From Epiperipatus broadwayi (Eukaryota > Animalia > Onychophora), in NCBI GenBank assembly GCA_028023455.1, contig JAQFVV010000009.1, forward strand, positions 930,001 through 994,000: a stretch of DNA of 64,000 bases, in the 5' to 3' direction. Below, piece by piece: positions 20,351 through 47,531 of this stretch. A program made the position numbers and the translations under genes. Position 1 is the stretch's first letter, and each line of letters begins with the position of its first letter. The notes beneath the pieces are model-generated. The model was not told where the DNA came from, did not search any database, and saw only the letters and a program-made list of their open reading frames with translations.

Positions 20351-21559
20351 TTTATTAAAAGTTTAGTTTAACAGAAAAAAAAATCATAATAACTTAAAGA
20401 ATGAAAAAAATAACTTAATGGAAATGATTTAAAAAAAAATTACATCAAATAAAATTAATTATTAATAATAATTTATGTTGGTCAGATAGGATTCTATTCC
20501 TGTTAAATACTGAAAAGGTTTTGGAATTAAAGTTCTTACTGTTTTGAAAATATTCATTAGTTATATAGTTCTTACTGTTTTAAAAAGGTCATCCTTAACA
20601 GTTGCTTGCAGTTTGGGATCCAGCATTAATTCCCCCGATGTCCTGTGGTCCGCAATATAGGAAAACAATGTCATTTCTTTTTTTTAAAACTGAAGGAATT
20701 GAAAGTGCATCTTTCAATCCCTTCTTCTTCAACTCTCTCCGACATAACACATATCACCCCTCTCTCTATCACATCTCTATCTTCTCTCTTTTTTTATTTC
20801 CAACTTTTTTCCTTTTATATTAGACTTTCGGATCAAGTGGACATTATGTCATGATGGTGGTCTTTTTGTTGAGGTCCATTTCCTGAGGGATTTCTTTTAT
20901 TGGCTATTAGTTTCTATTGTTTTTTCTGTCCTATCTGACCTTTAATTATACATTTTGAAATGCCCAAAGGCTAGTTCACTTGGACTAATTAAAATAATCA
21001 TTTCCATTTTGCACAATAGAATTAATTAGATTATTGTACATTCTTTTTATCTTTAAATCTTTTAAGTTCTTTTTTTTCTGAAAATTTAATTTTAAGATAC
21101 TTTCTTTTCTTTAATAAAGTTTTCTTTTAATAATTTTTCATCTGTGCCATTTTATATATATATAAAGTTTAGATGACTTAATTTTCAATTTTTAATTCTT
21201 AAAAAAAAAAGAGTTTTTATCTGCGAACTTTTATTTTTAATTTTATTTATTAGAATATATGTTACAATATCATATCAAATCATTTCAAACATTAAGAAAT
21301 TTTCAGATTACAGATATAAATGATATATTTTTTTAGTTCATCCAGTTATAATTTTTATTATATACTGACATTTCAGCTTAATTACTCAAGCCATCAACTG
21401 ACTAGAATATTATAAAAATGATTGTAGAGGTGCTGTAAACAATGATTCGTAGCAATGTTAAAATTTCATCAATGGAAAAAAGAGAGAATATTGGATATAT
21501 TGCTTTCCATCCACTTTTAACATCTTGTGGAGGGAGGTAATCATATACATATAACCAAA

Positions 21560-31237: not shown

Positions 31238-31250
31238 ATCATGTGTGTGT
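31238..31250 (+). repeat. Left copy of putative 13-bp target-site duplication of the composite PLE insertion (right copy 35614-35626)
   Basis: ATCATGTGTGTGT occurs at 31238-31250 and immediately after the end of the plus PLE arm at 35614-35626. Confidence 0.65.
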
Positions 31251-31487
31251 TTTTCTGAAGGTTTGTGATGCTGGTGTTCTAGCTGTATTTTAATATTGGA
31301 CTATTTCCATCATCTAATTTGTGTGTTGAATGTCTTAAGAAAAGTTTAATTTTAGTTAAATATTCCAAATGCATTCAACTATTAGTAATATCACAGCAAA
31401 CAGGTTAGTATATGCACCAACTGTTAATAATATCACAGCAAACAAATATTAGTAATATCACAGCAAACAGGTTAGTATATGCACAAT

Positions 31488-31519
31488 GTTTCGAAAGATA
31501 TTTTTTCCCTCTTCTTCAG
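31488..31519 (-). ncRNA. Hammerhead-ribozyme-like core (partial) in PLE tail
   Basis: Minus strand CTGAAGA-A-GAGGG-AAAAAATAT-CTTTC-GAAAC: CUGANGA and GAAA cores around a weak helix II. Helix I and the cleavage triplet could not be resolved by eye. Confidence 0.45.
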
Positions 31520-31545
31520 GTGTTGCTGGCCTGACCAGTGACAGT

Positions 31546-31630
31546 ACTAGCATGGGATTCGAACCTGGGTCCTTAGAATCTTGATAATTGAATTTTAAGG
31601 TAATGCTCTAACCAATTGAGCCATCCTGTC
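31546..31630 (-). promoter_or_regulatory. tRNA-like Pol III internal promoter (A box + B box) in the 3' tail of the minus PLE copy
   Basis: Minus strand reads GACAGGATGGCTCAATTGGTTAGAGC...GGTTCGAATCC; A box at 31612-31623, B box at 31555-31565. Confidence 0.7.
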
Positions 31631-33632
31631 AAAGGCAACAGTATGTAGTAATTTCATATACTTATCTATGAGGTTCCTCCTGATTTCTCCACTTTTTCCT
31701 CAGAGCAAAGTTGATTAGCGGTTTCCATACATTATGTATAGTCACACTAGGTTGGCTTATGTGATTTTTTGCCATTATCATGTGAGCAGCTTCTTTAAAT
31801 TTTCTTCTTTGTCCAATATTTTTGTATTTTCCCAATTGAACGTATGTTCATTGGTCCATACATGGTCTGCTACCTTAGACACATCAGTTTTTTTTCTTCT
31901 AATCATCAGTTTATGTTTTTGCAAGCACTTTTGAATAGGATGGCTGGTTTCACCAATATATGTTCTTCCACATTCACATGGTATTTCATAGATGCATTTT
32001 TTTCTTTGTAGCAATTCAAGTTTAGGCTTTGTAGATGTTAGAATTCCTCATAGTGTGGTATGGCTCTGGAAAGCTGTTCTGATGTTATACTGTTTGCAGA
32101 TTTTCCTTAATTTGTCTGCTATTTTTGGAATGTATGGATACACTACAGTACCAATAATAGTCTTTTCTCTTGGTGGTTCTTTTTGTTGTCTATTTAATGT
32201 TTTCTTAATAACAGCTGATGGATAACCATTTTTCTTAAGAGTTTGTTCTATATAGATCTTTTCTTTTTCCAAATCGCCAGTTTCTGAACAAACTTCTTTT
32301 GCTCTGTTCCACAGTGATAGTATAACTCCATGTTTTGTGTTTCTGGTGTGATTAGATGTATAGGCTAGGTATTTTCCTGTATGTGTAGATTTTTGGTAAA
32401 CTGTAGTTTTGATTTTGCCATGAGGCAGTCTTGTCACAAGAACATCTAAGAATGCCAATTTTTGTTCTTGTTCTGGTTCTATTGTAAATTTAATTGAAAG
32501 GGATATGTTGTTGATGTGTATCCAGAAAGTTTGTAACAATATGCTTCACCATGCAGCCATACAACAAATGTATCATCCACATAGCAAAGCCAAACTTTAG
32601 GTGGATAAGGAGTACTATTTATGGCTGTAGTTTCCATGTAAATATTGCTAATCATGGGAGACAATGGTGAGCCCATAGCCATTCCTTGATTTTGTTGGAA
32701 GAATTCTGTGTTATATTGAAAGTAGGTTGTTTTTATACAGAATGTTAATAGTTCCATTATGCTATCAATAGGAATAGCTGTTCTGGTTTGTAAACTATTA
32801 TCATCATTTAATCTTTTCCTTACAATAGACAATGCTTCTTCACATGGTACATTTGTGAATAAACTTTCCAGATCAAAGCTTACCAGTAAGTCAGTTCTTT
32901 CAATTTTCATGTTCTTGATTAATTCTACAAAGTGTCTAGAATCCCTGACAAATGATTGGGTCTTGAATGCCAAGGGACTTAGAACTTTGAGGAGAAATCT
33001 TGCCAAATTCTGGCAAGGTGAATCTCTAGAACTAACAATAGGTCATAATGGAACATGATCCTTATGGATTTAAGGTAGACCATAAAGATGAGGAATTTTG
33101 CTGAAATACGATGTTATTTTACTCTTTTCTGAATCCGTGAAGTACTTGCAATGCTTTCTGAGTAATGCTTGTAATTTTGTTTCCGTACTTGGTATTGGAT
33201 CTTTTGCCACTTTTCTATATTGGCCTGCTGTGAGGAGTTCTTGTATTTTGTTGTCGTAATCAGTTGTATCCATTACAACTGTTGCATTGCCTTTATCAGC
33301 AGGAAAAATAATTAGATTTATCTGCTTTGAGAGATTTAATTGCTTTCTTCTCCCCATAGAATATGTTTGACTGCAATTTTTGTTGCTTGTCAAGTGTTCT
33401 TTTTATTCTCCAGCATAATTCTGCTGCTTCTTCTAAAGGCAATTTTTGAGTGACTTCCTCAGAGTCTGCCATAATAAGAGGATATTAGATGGTGTTATAG
33501 CAAAGTTTAAATCTCTTTCAAGAACAGAAATTTCAGTATATTAGATGTTTAGAACTTAGATTTTTACCAGATGATGCTGTTACATTGCTTGGTACATTAT
33601 TTTTGATATGCCCATGTAGGTTAGCAAGTTTC

Positions 33633-33869
33633 TTCTTATGACATTCTTTTATTTTTTCATGTAATATAGAACATGATCTTCTTACTGCTTGAAAAACTCT
33701 CATGTAATCATCATCAGTAAGTTTATTTTTTAGAAGACATTCTACATTATTTCTTATGACATTCTTTTATTTTTTCATGTAATATAGAACATGATCTTCT
33801 TACTGCTTGAAAAACTCTCATGTAATCATCATCAGTAAGTTTATTTTTTAGAAGACATTCTACATTATT
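33633..33869. repeat. Two-copy tandem duplication inside PLE, 118-bp period
   Basis: TTCTTATGACATTCTTTT...GACATTCTACATTAT starts at 33633 and 33751; essentially identical. Confidence 0.9.
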
Positions 33870-35250
33870 AATTGAATGCATTGTTTGATACTTAGAATGA
33901 GCATTTATTCTTTCTCTTAATAGAGCTTCACTTGCTGAGTAATTTTCTCAGCTCTCTGAGAGTGAATTGGAGGCTTTAGTTGCAAACCTTTAGGAATTAT
34001 CTTTGGTGTGGAAAGTTTATTCACAAATGTACCATGTGAAGAAGCATTGTCTATTGTAAGGAAAAGATTAAATGATGATAATAGTTTACAAACCAGAACA
34101 GCTCTTCCTATTGATAGCATAATGGAACTATTAACATTCTGTATAAAAACAACCTACTTTCAATATAACACAGAATTCTTCCAAAAAAATCAAGGAATGG
34201 CTATGGGCTCACCATTATCTCCCCTGATTAGCAATATTTACATGGAAGAACTTGAAACCACAGCCATAAAAAATACTTCTTATCCACCTAAAGTTTGGCT
34301 TCGCTATGTGGATGATACATTTGTTGTATGGCCGCATGGTGAAGCATTGTTACAAACTTTCTGGACACACATCAACAACATATCCCCTTCAATTAAATTT
34401 ACAATAGAACAAGAACAAAAATTGGCATTCTTAGATGTTCTTGTGATAAGACTGCATCATGGCAAAATCAAAACTAGTTTACCGAAAACCTACACATACA
34501 GGAAAATACCTAGCCTATACATCTAATCACACCAGAAACACAAAACATGGAGTTATACCCTCACTGTGGAACAGAGCGAAAGAAGTTTGTTCAGAAACTG
34601 GTGATTTGGAAAAAGAAAAGATCTATATAGAACAAATTCTTAAGAAAAATGGTTATCCAGCAGCTGTTATTAAGAAAACATTAAATAGACAACAAAAAGA
34701 ACCATCAAGAGACTATTATTGGTACTGTAGTGTATCCATACATTTCAAAAATAGCAGACAAATTAAGGAAAATCTGCAAACAGTATAACATCAGAACAGC
34801 TTTCCAGAGCCATACCACACTATGAGGAATTCTAACATCTACAAAGCCTAAACTTAAAATGCTGCAAAGAAAAAACTGCATCTATGAAATACCATGTGAA
34901 TGTGGAAGAACATATATTGATGAAACCAGCCATCCCATTCAAAAGTGCTTGCAAGAACATAAACTGATGATTAGAAGAGAAAAAACAGATGTGTATAAGG
35001 TAGCAGCCCATGTATGGACCAATGAACATATGTTCAATTGGGAAAATACAAAAAGATTGGACAAAGAAAAGGTACAAAGAAAATTTAAAGAAGCTGCTCA
35101 CATGACAATGGCAAAAAATCCCATAAGCCAACCTAGTGTGACTATACATAATGTATGGAAACCTCTAATCAACTTTGCTCTGAGGAAAAAGTGGAGAAAC
35201 CAGGAGGAACCTCATAGATAAGTATATGAAATTACTACATAGTTGCCTTT

Positions 35251-35335
35251 GGCAGAATGGCTCAGTTGGTTAGAGCATTACCTTAAAATTCAAGTATCAA
35301 GATTCTAAGAACCCAGGTTCGAATCCCACGCTAGT
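35251..35335 (+). promoter_or_regulatory. tRNA-like Pol III internal promoter (A box + B box) in the 3' tail of the plus PLE copy
   Basis: TGGCTCAGTTGG (35258-35269) within a perfect D-arm GCTC-AGTTGGTTA-GAGC; GGTTCGAATCC (35316-35326). T-stem and acceptor stem do not pair, so this is not a functional tRNA. Confidence 0.75.
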
Positions 35336-35361
35336 ACTGTCACTGGTCAGGCCAGCAACAC

Positions 35362-35395
35362 CTGAAGAAGAGGGGAGAAAAATACCTCTCGAAAC
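35362..35395 (+). ncRNA. Hammerhead-ribozyme-like core (partial) in PLE tail
   Basis: CTGAAGA-A-GAGGGG-AGAAAAATA-CCTCTC-GAAAC: conserved core boxes with a 6-bp helix II (one G-U). Helix I and the NUH site are unresolved. Confidence 0.5.
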
Positions 35396-35397
35396 AT

Positions 35398-35538
35398 TGT
35401 GCATATACTAACCTGTTTGCTGTGATATTACTAACAGTTAGTGCATATACTAACCTGTTTGCTGTGATATTACTAACATTTGTTTGCTGTGATATTACTA
35501 ACAGTTGGTGCATATACTAACCTGTTTGCTGTGATATT
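35398..35538 (+). repeat. Composite tandem repeat in PLE tail (4 copies of TGTTTGCTGTGATATT; 3 copies in the minus arm at ~31381-31485)
   Basis: Units GCATATACTAACCTGTTTGCTGTGATATTACTAACA(GTTAGT) read directly from sequence. Confidence 0.9.
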
Positions 35539-36849
35539 GAATGCATTTGGAAAATTTAACTAAAAGTAAACTTTTCTAAAGACATTCAACACACAAATTA
35601 AATGATGGAAATAATCATGTGTGTGTATACCTATATAAATCTACAGACATAAATATTATTTCCACTTTATATTCTGATTCTTTATTTACAAAAAAATCTA
35701 GATGCATTTTATGAATGTAGGTAATTTTATGGAAAGAGCAAGATGGTAACAAACTTGTGGAGAAATTTGATCAACATCAATATGAAGGAATCATGGATAT
35801 CTTAATTTTATATTATAGAGATTTCAGGGTCGAATGAAACATATTACTATATTATTTTCTTATGGAAAATTTATCTACTAGGCTATATCACAATTGTTAA
35901 ACCACTGTCTCAGAAAGAAAAGATTTAATCATTGGCATAAAGATATTTCATCAAGAATCTACTGATATTCATTGCAGTAAAGTAGTGCAACCTTCACATC
36001 ATTACAATAGATGTAACCTTGCCTATGAATAATTTGAAGCTATTTAGCATCAACACAATAAATGACTTATCCATCAAAAACCATTAGTTTTGCCAACTTT
36101 CTTGGTTGTTGCATGAATGCAAGATGAGGAACTAAGCCAAATGAGCTTTGCTCATTTTAGATTATATGAATAATGCCTATGAATAGAGAAATGATGGAAA
36201 ACTTGCAACAGTGCCACAGAATATTCTGACTACAAATGGGTCTCAAACCAATTACAAAATCCTCATTAATTTATACAGGAAGTATACAAGATCCAAGCAA
36301 ACATAACTCTGTTTTCCTAAATATCCCATTCAAACTTATTTCATTGCTTATTATAGATTAGTATCTATCTAATTAATCACACAACCTTTTAGTTTCTAAT
36401 AATTCTTTTAATCTGAGATGTAGTTGTATGTTTTATAGTGACAATTATTATTCTGTTTGAGACAATTTTTTTTTCTTTATTACCTTAAGTCACAAGAAGT
36501 AGGTGATCATATCAGAATTTTGAAACACAGGAAAATTTTACAAAGACACTGTGATACTCGTAAGATGTTTTACAACACTTGGGTATTGGTAATCAAGGCT
36601 CATTTTAACTATGTCTACTTAATTATTACCCTTTCGTTTTCTTTCCATTAATAGTTATGGACTTGACTTCTTCTAGCTCCTTTTCTAATAGGCCATTTCA
36701 TTATTACCTCTTTTTTCCACATTTCCATAGCATTGATACTAACAATTTATTTCACTTTGTGTGATGGTTTATTTTGCTGACTCTGAAAGCTTATGCCTAC
36801 AACATTTAATAATTCTGCCACTTGTTCAGTACTTTTTATCTATGGTTAA

Positions 36850-39378: not shown

Positions 39379-41204
39379 TTTAACGGGCAACCCCTTTCTC
39401 AGGTCTTATCCGACGTTGGTGAACTTAAACCAAATAATATAGATCTCAAAAAATGGACAAGTGAGCCTAACCGAAGACTAGATGGAATTTCTATGGCTGT
39501 CTAGTCGCCATAACACCTGTAGGTAATGTTTAAATATTACCCACCAAAGAAAATTTCTGATACGAATTAGTTATACCAGTATTGTTTACTTGATGCAAAT
39601 TTTAAGTGTTGCATAAATAGGATTTAAGATAAATGAATAAAAGTTTCCGGTTGCCCTTGTATCTTGAATAAGATCTAAATATAAAAAAAATCTCTATGGG
39701 AGAATATATCTATGAGCGTCAATTTATCGATGACCTCAAGCGCCAAACTCACTGTTACGATGAGAATTATATTTCCCGATTAACGAGGTGCCTGACCCAA
39801 GCTAACTCACTCCCAGGGTGGTGAGGAAAACCTATTGGATGAATGGAGATAATAACACACAAAAAAATAAAGGTTTGTAATTAATTTATAATGCACTCAT
39901 AGACATATCCACTTACCTCGGACATATTTGAATCATTGGAATTTATTTGGCAAATGAAGTAATTAGAAAATGTAAATGATAATTACTGAATAACTCTAAC
40001 GCAAAGGTAAATCTGTACTAAATTTTATTATTAATATCTAAATGCTATCTATGTAAATCAATTCTTATCCCTCCCATTTAAAATATATAATAAGTTCCCA
40101 AATCATAAATGAAACAATAAAACATTTAATTTAGAATAAATACATATTTATTTATATATATAAGAAAAAAAAAATACTATACAGTTGTACGCAATAATTT
40201 TGTTATGAAATAATTTAAGAAAGTTTGTTATTTCGAGGGTAGCTATAAGCAGTTCTGAGTTATATAAAAACATAGTTCACTTTACCTGACGAAACACCGG
40301 GGTATAGGATTAGAATGTAATGAAGCATATCAAGTGGATTTCCGTGATCTAGTAGTATTTGAAGTTGCCTTATGAAAGCGCAATATAAATTTCTTTCTAT
40401 AGAGTCCGATATTTAGATGTCCATAAGTGATGGCGGAGCTGTAAGTGGAGTCTTGTCTAATATAATTTTCAAATCAAATAAATTCATATTTTGGGACGTA
40501 CGATTCTATTTCATTTTATGTTCAGCGGTCACAATCTAACTGAATCTGTCTTTTTCCTTTCTCCAATTCTCATTAATTAATTTTTTGTCTAATTAATTTT
40601 CATTTCTCAGACAAAGGAATTTTTTTTATCGGATCTCTAATCTAATTCTTTTTCTTTGAATAGGTTTTCCTTTCCAAATTACTTTTACTTCTTTAAATTT
40701 ACATTTCCATTGTTTTGGTGGTGCCGTCATTCCTGGTATCTATTCTTTTTGGTCAAACATTCTTTGGCTTTTTCTTGGAATTTTATTTTTGCAGTAATTA
40801 GCGATTGTGATTCAAACACAGAATTTCTTGAAGACACAAACAATACTTCCTTTTCGCTACCCTCGTTAATTTGAAATATAATTGAAACTTAAATCAATAT
40901 TCTAAACAATATATAACATATTTGCACACAACTGTAATTTTGTCAATTTGTAATATTTTAAAAGTAAAACATTCTAAATAAATAATGCTTACTAATCAAT
41001 CCCTTCCCCATTTATTTTCTAACAAAAAAAAAAAGAATAATAAAGAAAAAGAGTTTAAAATTTACTTCATGCATGTATATATATGTATAATTATATATAT
41101 ATTTTAACCCTTTATCGCCCGCTTGAATATATACCTGTATTGAGGGTAATGCGTATGCACTTTTCACTTTCTTGTAACAGGGTTTGAACCCAGTTACTGT
41201 TACA
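39379..41204 (-). repeat. 3' LTR (~1.83 kb)
   Basis: Collinear with 45572-47531; begins TGTAACAG on the minus strand at 41204 and ends GTTAAA at 39379. Confidence 0.92.
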
Positions 41205-44616: not shown

Positions 44617-45186
44617 TTAAATCTCCCTTATTTGTTCATCTACCTCAATTTGATTTAACATTTTGTCAACTTCTTTGGTTGATCTACTTTTAATCCCTAT
44701 TCGGTATCTTATTTCTAATGGCAAATTTCGATAAATGATTTTTACTATCTGATTCTCAGATAGCTTCTCACTCTCTAATGTCTTCAGTGTGGCCACTTGT
44801 CGTCTGAAGAATCGTATGTGGTTGTCCTTCCCTTTTTCTGAAAACTTCTGATTAATGATTCGCATTTTGATATTTTCCTGCTGTTCCTCATTCCAAAACG
44901 TCTTCTTCAGGGCTTTTTCATACTCTTGGTATGTTTGGGGTTGGTGTAACATAGAATCCCACCACATTTTTGCATATCCTAGAAGGTGGACCTGTGCTAA
45001 GATTATTTTGAATTCCTCCAGTATCCCATATCTCCTAAAATATTTTTGTAAGCTATTTATATGCTCCTTTGGGCTCTCTTCCTTCTTTCCTCTAAATACC
45101 TTCATTTCCATCCCCTCTATCTCCTGTAATCTTGTTATTGTCATATCTATACTGACTGTCTCTCCTACTTTACCTTTGAGATACAT
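44617..45186 (-). pseudogene. gag (capsid-like) fragment
   Basis: 189-aa ORF with F.G...SP.EHI..LQKYF.......I.LA..HL.GYAKMWW...Y.EYEKAL...FW, typical of Ty3/Gypsy retrotrans_gag; located between PBS and pol. Confidence 0.85.
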
Positions 45187-45571: not shown

Positions 45572-47531
45572 TTTAACAGGCAACCCCTTTCTCACGTCTT
45601 ATCCGACATTGAACTTAAACCAAATAATATAGATCTCAAGAAATGGACAAGTGAGCCTAACCGAAGACTAGATGGAATTTCTATGGCTGTCTAGTCGCCA
45701 TAACACTTGTAGGTAATGTTTAAATATTACCCACCAAAGAAAATTCTGATACGAATTAGTTATACCAGTATTGTTTACTTGACGTAAGTGTTGCATAAAT
45801 AGGATTTAAGATAAATGAATAAAAGTTTCCGGTTGCCCTTGTATCTTGAATAAGATCTAAATATAAAAAAAATCTCTACGGAAGAATATATTTATGAGCG
45901 TCAATTTATCAATGATCTCAAGTGCCAAACTCACTGTTATGATGAGAATTATATTTCCCAATTAACGAGGTGCCTGACCCAAGCTAACTCACTCCCAGGG
46001 TGGAGAGGAAAACCTATCGGATGAACGGAGATAATAACACAAAAAATATAGGTTTGTAATTTATAATGCACTCATAGACATATCTACTTACCTCGGACAT
46101 ATTTAAATCATTGGAATTTATTTGGCAAATGAAGTAATTAGAAAATGTAAATGATAATTACTGAATAACTCTAACGCAAAGGTAAATCTGTACTAAATTT
46201 TATTATTAATATCTAAACGCTATCTATGTAAATCAATTCTTATCCCTCCCATTTAAAATATATAAGTTCCCAAATCATAAATGAAACAATAAAACATTTA
46301 ATTTAGAATACATATTAATTTATATATATAAGAAAAAAAAATTTTTACTATATAGTTGTATGCAATAATTTTATGTTATGAAATAATTTAAAAAAGTTTG
46401 TTATTTCGAGGGTAACTATAAGCAGTTCTGAGTTATATAAAAACATAGTTCACTTTACCTGACGAAACCCCGGGATATGGGATTAGAATGTAATGAAGCA
46501 TATCAAGTGGGTTTCCGTGATCTAGTAGTATTTGAAGTTGCCTTATGAAAGTGCAATATATAATTTCTTTCTACAGAGTCCGATATTTAGATGTCCATAA
46601 GTGATGGCGGAGCTGTAAGTGGAGTCTTGTCTAATATAATTTTCAAATCAAATAAATTCATATTTTGGGACGTACGATTTCTATTTCATTTTATGTTCAG
46701 CAATCCAGAGTATTCGCGAGGTTCCTAGGTTCTTCGGCGGCAGGCGGTTTATAGTCAGTTCACATCGGCTGCGGGTGATGAAGCCCTTTACGTATGGTCC
46801 TTATCCATCATGTTAAATTTTTTTTTTTATATATCTTATAAGTCTGTCTCACTCAGCGGTCACAATCTAACTGAATCTGTCTTTTTCCTTTCTCCAATTC
46901 TCATTAATTAATTTTTTGTCTAATTAATTTTCATTTCTCAGACAAAGGAATTTTTTTTATCGGATCTCTAATCTAATTCTTTTTCTTTGAATAGGTTTTC
47001 CTTTCCAAATTACTTTTACTTCTTTAAATTTACATTTCCATTGTTTTGGTGGTGCCATCATTCCTGGTATCTATTCTTTTTGGTCAAACATTATTTGGCT
47101 TTTTCTTAGAATTTTATTTTTGCAGTAATTAGCGATTGTGATTCAAACACAGAATTGCTTGAAGGCACAAACAATATTTCCTTTTCGCTACCCTCGTTAA
47201 TTTGAAATATAATTGAAACTTAAATCAATATTCTAAACAATATATAACATATTTGCACACAACTGTAATTTTGTCAATTTGTAATAATTTTAAAAGTAAA
47301 ACATTCTCAATGAATAATGCTTACTAATCAATCCCTTCCCCGTTTATTTTCTAACAAAAAAAAAATAATAAAGAAAGAGTTTAAAATTTACTTCACGCAT
47401 GTATATATATATGTATAATTCTATGTATTTTTAACCCTTTATCGCCCGCTTGAATATATACCTGTATTGAGGGTAATGCGTACGTGCTTTTCACTTTCTT
47501 GTAACAGGGTTTGAACCCAGCTACTGTTATA
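45572..47531 (-). repeat. 5' LTR (~1.96 kb), containing a 156-bp segment absent from the 3' LTR
   Basis: Collinear with 39379-41204; extra segment at 46702-46857. Confidence 0.92.

Follow-up and report, generated by a model that had tools for sequence, protein, structure and literature searches.

An apparently tRNA-derived block beside the predicted minimal hammerhead ribozyme of a Penelope-like element family in Epiperipatus broadwayi

A stretch of 64,000 nt from the onychophoran Epiperipatus broadwayi (contig JAQFVV010000009.1, positions 930,001–994,000 of the forward strand; termed the window, its first letter being position 1) contains a Penelope-like element (PLE). In the 3′ tail of this element a tRNA-type RNA polymerase III (Pol III) promoter sequence stands directly upstream of a sequence resembling a hammerhead ribozyme. 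The question raised by this locus is whether the two form a module that makes its own short ribozyme RNA, as proposed in a preliminary description of the window, or whether the tRNA-like sequence is carried by a PLE that is otherwise ordinary. The second answer is the probable one: positions 31238–35626 appear to represent a single insertion of a canonical endonuclease-bearing PLE as an inverted dimer, with a captured tRNA-derived block and a standard PLE hammerhead, copied in the ordinary PLE way. PLE hammerheads and the insertion structure are already known; what is new is a tRNA-derived block with perfect Pol III boxes in an autonomous PLE. No description of such a block was found in the papers searched on PLEs, retrozymes and repeats with Pol III promoters.

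The region 31238–35626 consists of a near-full-length copy on the minus strand and a 5′-truncated copy on the plus strand, joined head to head. The sequence ATCATGTGTGTGT is present on both sides as a target-site duplication (left copy 31238–31250, right copy 35614–35626, both read from the window letters), and the whole stretch is therefore one head-to-head insertion. The last 3 nt of the left duplication overlap the element end, which gives a true length of 7–13 bp. The minus arm (31248–34000, delimited by self-BLAST, BLAST against other loci, open reading frames and Pfam matches to RVT_1 and GIY-YIG) has a length of 2,753 nt (~2.75 kb) and its open reading frame is frameshifted. Because an independent copy (L028:1916) has the same 5′ end point, the minus arm is considered to be close to full length, the ~2.75 kb including a 119-bp internal duplication. 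This is a perfect (100%) tandem duplication of 118/119 bp at positions 33633–33869, in the 5′ coding part of the copy, and it is younger than the remaining decay of the minus arm. The plus arm (34001–35616, from its alignment with the minus arm) is also shortened at its 3′ end. Self-BLAST shows the two arms to be 91% identical over 1,643 nt.

The ends of the element were determined by alignment of 94 loci taken from the 5.6-Gb genome to which the window belongs. The family 3′ ends read ...GATGGAAATAGTCCAATATAAAAATACAG and extend past the boundary that had been given before. When 98 of the 3′ ends were aligned, roughly half of them finished at ...AAAAATACAG, and roughly half continued with a 36-nt extension ending in ...CCTTCAGAAAAACA. 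The long form is found on the minus arm, where the extension occupies positions 31248–31283, and the plus arm stops early at ~35616; thus the tail is present at one end only. The limits 31302–35613 of the preliminary description hold as the limits of similarity between the arms, but not as element ends, the true 3′ end being at ~31248 on the minus arm and the plus arm being shortened (~35616). The same layout of an inverted pair with a target-site duplication and reverse-complementary flanks recurs in loci L047 and L054, L028 has the layout as well, and the sampled copies are mostly inverted pairs with variable 5′ truncation.

These properties are those of published PLE insertions, in which the 5′ end is accompanied by a truncated copy in inverted orientation and a tail of 30–40 bp is confined to one of the two ends (Craig et al. 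2021, PMC8557442). The window family displays 5′ truncation, an inverted neighboring copy, a one-sided tail and a target-site duplication, and its 36-nt extension fits the published tail length. It shares with the canonical endonuclease-bearing PLEs (see Evgen'ev and Arkhipova 2005; Craig et al. 2021) the reverse transcriptase, followed here by a GIY-YIG-like C-terminus, the heavy 5′ truncation, the inverted 5′-truncated copy beside the 5′ end, the one-sided tail of 30–40 bp and the target-site duplication. It differs from them by the tRNA-derived A/B-box block between the stop codon and the hammerhead.

The coding parts confirm that the element is a PLE. Pfam searches gave RVT_1 scores of 42–55 bits, and a reverse transcriptase open reading frame piece is found at 32479–33006 on the minus strand (42 bits). 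The piece encoding the putative GIY-YIG endonuclease, at 31778–32014 on the minus strand, scores slightly under the Pfam cut-off (PF01541, 22.2 bits; cut-off 22.6; E-value = 1.8e-4), and no Pfam match to GIY-YIG was obtained with the frameshifted C-terminus of locus L012. The motif CIYEIPCECGRTYIGET in this piece is conserved in an alignment of relatives (alignment A2), and the segment ..IYEIPCECGRTYIGET.. aligns with the VYxIPCxCxxxYIGET motif conserved in relatives. A HMMER search yielded 42,907 relatives, the best representative (834 aa) with 52% identity. In the plus arm, the open reading frame list places the C-terminal (GIY-YIG) piece together with its stop codon at 34859–35224.

The motifs reported previously for the tail, i.e. 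the D-arm/A box, B box, CTGAAGA, CGAAAC, tandem array and a run without TTTT, are all present in both arms. The order of parts is ~35 nt after the stop codon, the tRNA-derived block of ~92 nt, the hammerhead, an array of 42-nt units and ~110 nt of terminal sequence. In the plus arm, the window letters show the D-arm with A box at 35258–35276 (TGGCTCAGTTGGTTAGAGC; D stem GCTC/GAGC), the A box itself (TGGCTCAGTTGG) at 35258–35269, within the D-arm 35260–35276, and the B box (GGTTCGAATCC) at 35316–35326. From start to start the two boxes are 58 nt apart, which is a working distance. CTGAAGA is found at 35362–35368 and CGAAAC at 35390–35395. The array, with a 42-nt unit GTGCATATACTAACC...ACAGTTA and a period of 42/25, covers 35398–35538 (from TRF), and the unit number varies among copies. 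The first TTTT after the A box, at 35572–35575, is conserved in the consensus and lies ~75 nt before the full family 3′ end. In the minus arm the block is found at 31528–31623 by arm alignment (A box 31612–31623, B box 31555–31565), and the first TTTT after the A box at 31623 is at 31343.

The block is tRNA-derived, but no tRNA can be folded from it; both boxes are retained and the cloverleaf is not. ARAGORN made no tRNA call in the window or in ~70 family copies. A copy in which the CpG dinucleotides are intact gave 11.5 bits with the Rfam tRNA model, against a gathering score of 29. In an alignment to tRNA, a 25-nt stretch replaces the anticodon arm, and the pairs of the T and acceptor stems are broken. 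Two other tRNA-like sequences were encountered. The flank of a PLE copy at L085:1629–1701 gave an ARAGORN call similar to tRNA-Gly(tcc), which is probably the head of a different tRNA-derived short interspersed element (SINE) of this genome. A metagenomic PLE locus, at L101:2193–2247, has A and B boxes 44 nt apart upstream of the open reading frame match; these probably belong to a genuine tRNA gene or to a SINE that lies beside the element and not in its tail.

The block is a family-wide character: it is contiguous with the open reading frame end and directly upstream of the hammerhead in every sampled copy that reaches that far. A search of the genome for the combination B box-N(10–40)-CTGANGA-N(12–30)-CGAAAC gave 2,363 exact matches and none with a reversed control, which exceeds what chance would give. 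Genome counts were obtained with 21-mers, allowing up to two mismatches, at positions numbered relative to the tRNA-like +1. The open reading frame end (−64) was found 16,055 times, the untranslated sequence just past the stop codon (−32) 5,213 times, the tRNA head (+6) 17,986 times, the spacer (+83) 32,835 times and the 3′ end 80,331 times. The family thus has ~80,000 arms carrying the 3′ terminal word, and ~18,000 heads adjoin ~16,000 open reading frame ends at a fixed 69-nt offset.

The block is absent from the relatives examined outside of the family. A B box, with one mismatch allowed, was found between the stop codon and the hammerhead in none of 27 foreign PLE relatives, and the block is also lacking in a PLE of 36% identity in locus L091 of the window's own genome. 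An older paralogue from the same genome, L002, is 68–70% identical and has no block; its sequence ...GGAAGAAT is directly joined to AGCAACTGATGAAG... By BLAST, position 983 of L002 corresponds to window position 35261 and position 985 to window position 35354, which places the ~92-nt block (D-arm, degenerate anticodon region, B box and spacer) at 35262–35353 on the plus strand. These boundaries were taken from BLAST, and a three-way MAFFT alignment misplaced the gap. At the same junction L002 has a decayed ribozyme (L002:936–988, 18.4 bits with the model R1 described below). The simplest reading is that this lineage gained the ~92 nt in one event. It had been said before that a SINE inserted into only this lineage of copies and absent from most family members would refute a built-in module. 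This is borne out insofar as related PLEs are without the block, in line with a lineage-specific gain, but the block is not absent from family members.

The sequence described earlier as a hammerhead-like core can be identified, from its sequence, as the ordinary minimal hammerhead of PLEs, type I. In PLE minimal hammerheads, one base between positions 9 and 10.1 stays unpaired and the G10.1-C11.1 pair is conserved; helix II is long, helix I is short and helix III is lacking, and the 15.2–16.2 pair is palindromic, which permits a dimer (Cervera and de la Pena 2014, PMC4209133). In the plus arm (35354–35406) the predicted parts are helix I CAC/GUG, the core CUGAAGA, an extra A at 35369, helix II GAGGGG/CCUCUC of 6 bp, and GAAA at 35391–35394; cleavage is predicted after U 35398, at a GUU site. 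The consensus of the non-coding tail, from an alignment of 50 copies, reads CAC, CUGAAGA, A, GAGGGG-loop-CCUCUC, GAAA, CGU, U^GUG. The window family has a U16.1-H17 site, a helix II that is long and, adjoining the cleavage site, a helix I that is short, and CUGAAGA-A-G...C-GAAA is found in the window and the consensus and likewise in 32 relatives. An extra base after A9 and the missing helix III were considered as disqualifying features and this was rejected, as both are published traits of PLE minimal hammerheads.

Position 35396 is A in both window arms and G in the family consensus. The consensus and many copies have the palindromic ACGU where both window arms have ACAU, and the C15.2-G16.2 pair is thus predicted to be broken in both window copies by a transition of the CpG decay type. 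The preliminary description could not resolve helix I or a cleavage site of the NUH type. The short CAC/GUG accounts for helix I, and the consensus displays the GUU site; in the window the site is indeed blurred, because of CpG decay.

The hammerhead was also examined in 80 PLE relatives from metagenome contigs, which have 30–51% protein identity, with a simple motif descriptor. The motif is present on the sense strand in 32 of the 80 and on the antisense strand in 5, and the extra base is never lacking. Its start was measured in 27 loci and lies ~0–567 nt after the stop codon, with one case overlapping the stop codon. Helix I and the palindrome were outside of the descriptor. In 29 of these relatives helices I and II and the 15.2–16.2 pair covary (0.742, versus 0.185 for shuffled sequences; 0 of 500 shuffles were as high), and 83% of cells in the 29-sequence alignment are paired, versus 27%–37% for slid partners. 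The 15.2–16.2 pair among the relatives is CG in 17, GC in 5 and UA in 4.

A covariance model (termed R1) was built only from the 29 foreign relatives and the 64-kb window was scanned with filters off. The two arms gave 34 bits (plus arm, E-value = 3e-5) and 33.3 bits (minus arm, 31477–31527, a full-length match, E-value = 4e-5), and the next best match in the window was 16.2 bits. The hammerhead is therefore firmer than was first thought; every published PLE trait fits and the 34 bits come from a model made of foreign relatives. The weak matches at 21359–21408 (minus strand, 16.2 bits) and 44796–44855 (plus strand, 13.6 bits), the first of which has no tRNA-like head upstream, are chance matches or very old remnants. 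No hammerhead family was matched in Rfam, at the gathering threshold or at E ≤ 10, by the window, the tail or the CpG-intact copy, and at the gathering threshold the window matched no Rfam family; this reflects the coverage of the Rfam models and not the absence of a ribozyme, as R1 shows. With RNAcofold, the hammerhead dimer is not favored over pairing of the palindromic GUGCAUAU, a result that says little either way.

The 3′/pseudo-LTR (long terminal repeat) position, the core boxes and the other traits are the same as those of the PLE minimal hammerheads described by Cervera and de la Pena (2014, PMC4209133) and, as far as it is related in PMC6765202, by Lunse et al. (2016). Nothing essential differs, but helix I here has only three solid pairs and the window copies have lost C15.2-G16.2.

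Several observations touch the same region. The array starts exactly at the predicted cleavage site in both arms (35398/35399 and 31484/31485). In front of each further array unit stands ACAGTT(A/G), similar to the AACGTT that precedes the first unit. A clustering of 5′ ends exactly at reference position 2517, the cleavage site, was considered and rejected, being mostly an alignment artefact of the tandem array; the real junctions are 2–6 nt inside the unit. Canonical type I hammerheads were also found elsewhere in the genome, at L061:1507 and 1926, L062:1507 (minus strand) and 2237 (plus strand), in L063 and L064, and at L030:2138. These have the form CTGAAGA-GACC-loop-GGTC-GAAAC..GTC^TGGGG, score above the Rfam cut-off and sometimes occur twice in one locus, separated by a few hundred nt. 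Their appearance is that of retrozymes, and they are unrelated to the motif in the PLE tail.

Several points weigh against a captured block that is only carried along. The gain is based on one older copy within the genome together with the foreign relatives, and a deletion in that copy may account for its lack of the block. In a genome search with the tail of L002, only one or two other matches span the junction. No donor SINE was identified for the block, and we infer its SINE or tRNA source. Across subfamilies, the 21 nt that separate the head from the open reading frame end are retained far less well (5,213) than the head (17,986) or the open reading frame end (16,055) itself, and this hints at a constraint on the block. 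Lastly, the 5′ ends of 110 arms are scattered, but 9 of the 110 start at −10 to +4 of the tRNA-like +1, where ~1.5 are expected from the density just upstream, an excess of roughly sixfold. Such an excess at the tRNA boundary is not predicted by plain random truncation.

The last two points are also the ones that favor a working Pol III promoter. If the A and B boxes were used, the ~320-nt ribozyme RNA may serve the element or be retrotransposed as a SINE/retrozyme offshoot. The boxes are a perfect consensus at the 58-nt spacing and the tRNA stems are decayed as in SINE heads; the excess of 5′ ends is where Pol III would start, and the subfamilies conserve the head no less than the coding end. 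The block would then be a live Pol III promoter in an autonomous PLE, with the short hammerhead RNA occasionally copied back by the PLE enzyme, and the family would be spawning tRNA-headed hammerhead SINEs. Both the promoter and this larger picture are regarded as unlikely, for the following reasons.

The run without TTTT from the A box to 35572 had been given as a property of the tail. It is present as described in both arms, but the sense strand as a whole is poor in TTTT. In the 2,754-nt copy, TTTT occurs on the sense strand only at element positions 187, 305, 693 and 2658, so that no TTTT is found for 1,964 nt upstream of the one in the tail. Because there are only four such sites on the whole strand, the run is no adaptation peculiar to the tail. 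TTTT is also lacking in 6% of 315-nt windows drawn at random here. Furthermore, the TTTT at 35572 is ~75 nt before the family 3′ end and all sampled copies run 40–75 nt past it; a transcript end at the first T run, as in a SINE, was not found.

The 5′ ends show a similar picture. The counts of 16,055, 17,986, 32,835 and 80,331 at −64, +6, +83 and the 3′ end form the smooth gradient of 5′ truncation. Arms beginning between −44 and +6 are at most ~11% of those that bear a head and ~2% of all arms. The solo tail units that had been proposed therefore exist at most as a minority, ≤ ~11% of head-bearing copies starting near the tRNA boundary. From the genome counts, the hazard of a 5′ end is ~0.008 per nt at +26 to +83, against 0.0016 upstream and 0.0035 downstream; the steepest loss is thus inside the block and not at its start. 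A SINE would be a short unit with a fixed Pol III 5′ end that outnumbers its autonomous partner, and here 17,986 heads stand against 16,055 open reading frame ends. In the inverted dimers, the promoter of the upstream arm points away from the full-length copy, and no tandem hammerhead unit is present. The proposal of a Pol III ribozyme RNA as the source of a SINE/retrozyme is thus not supported, given the scarcity of TTTT on the whole strand, the read-through of TTTT in the tail and the ordinary truncation gradient.

The concentration of 5′ ends within the block and at its edge could also be explained if the block acts at the level of RNA or chromatin, i.e. as a stop or fold-back point for the reverse transcriptase, as a processing signal of the RNase P/Z type, or as a TFIIIC boundary against silencing. 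The hazard of ~0.008 per nt at +26 to +83 is consistent with this, as is a hairpin of 5 bp, TTGCC-TTT-GGCAG, exactly at the block boundary, where the junction in L090 is a fold-back. However, the cloverleaf needed for RNase P/Z is not formed, and part of the differences in the counts may be due to probe words that decayed at unequal rates. Such a role is judged unlikely, and less probable than that of a promoter. That the segment is an unrelated SINE which landed in this copy or in a small sub-lineage would fit the one older related copy without it (L002), but is refuted at that level and hardly conceivable, as the block is in both arms and every sampled copy reaching it, its ~18,000 heads lie next to ~16,000 open reading frame ends at the fixed offset, and it has no target-site duplication of its own.

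The preferred history, capture followed by ordinary PLE copying, may be envisaged as follows. A single capture in this lineage would have placed the block between the stop codon and the hammerhead; most simply it would be a fragment of a tRNA-derived SINE or a copy of a tRNA. It would then have been carried along through the expansion to ~80,000 arms. The PLE reverse transcriptase would make the copies from element transcripts, often truncating them heavily at the 5′ end and folding back. Any activity of the hammerhead would be that of a dimer, in keeping with other PLEs. Pol III factors may bind to the block, but most copies would not stem from Pol III transcripts.

Three known systems bear a likeness to this family. 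Schistosoma's Sm-alpha and Sj-alpha sequences are, as the work of Ferbeyre et al. (1998) is related in PMC6765202 and PMC2770079, short non-coding repeats with canonical hammerheads that are reportedly transcribed by Pol III. On that account, both have a Pol III-type promoter and a hammerhead in one short unit; here, however, the module forms the 3′ end of an element that is autonomous, and few of the units are solo. The TRIMp3 elements Cassandra, Helenus and Ajax have a Pol III promoter that comes from a small RNA gene in the terminal repeat, proposed to have been acquired by SINE insertion (Kojima 2024, PMC10886601). The likeness is in a Pol III promoter built into the terminal repeat of a retrotransposon, but TRIMp3 are non-autonomous LTR elements, whereas the present family is an autonomous PLE with a ribozyme adjoining the block. 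The animal non-LTR retrozymes are tandem units, each with a canonical type I hammerhead (Cervera and de la Pena 2020, PMC7229834; Li et al. 2026 preprint 10.64898/2026.07.22.740005). They are likewise hammerhead-bearing sequences related to PLE pseudo-LTRs, but here there is one hammerhead per copy and the 42-nt array units hold no core.

The arrangement is unusual in that the block is fixed between the stop codon and the ribozyme in a family of tens of thousands of copies, and none of the relatives examined has it. Should the boxes be in use, this family would show how SINEs of the Sm-alpha type or retrozyme-like non-autonomous elements can bud from PLEs, and the Pol III promoter in a terminal repeat, as in Cassandra, Helenus and Ajax, would be extended to a third class of retrotransposons. 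A Pol III origin of the short RNA, if true, would be a direct evolutionary bridge that links PLEs, Sm-alpha-type SINEs and animal retrozymes. If the boxes are not used, the family is a clean case of a captured passenger sequence. It also calls for caution in the annotation of tRNAs and SINEs, since ~18,000 tRNA-like heads of this genome belong to a PLE.

The contig has a GC content of 28% and is rich in PLEs. Elsewhere in the window, positions 39603–40821 and 45785–47152 contain four collinear direct-repeat blocks, 94%–99% identical and ~6.2 kb apart. These could represent a tandem duplication or the terminal repeats of another element.

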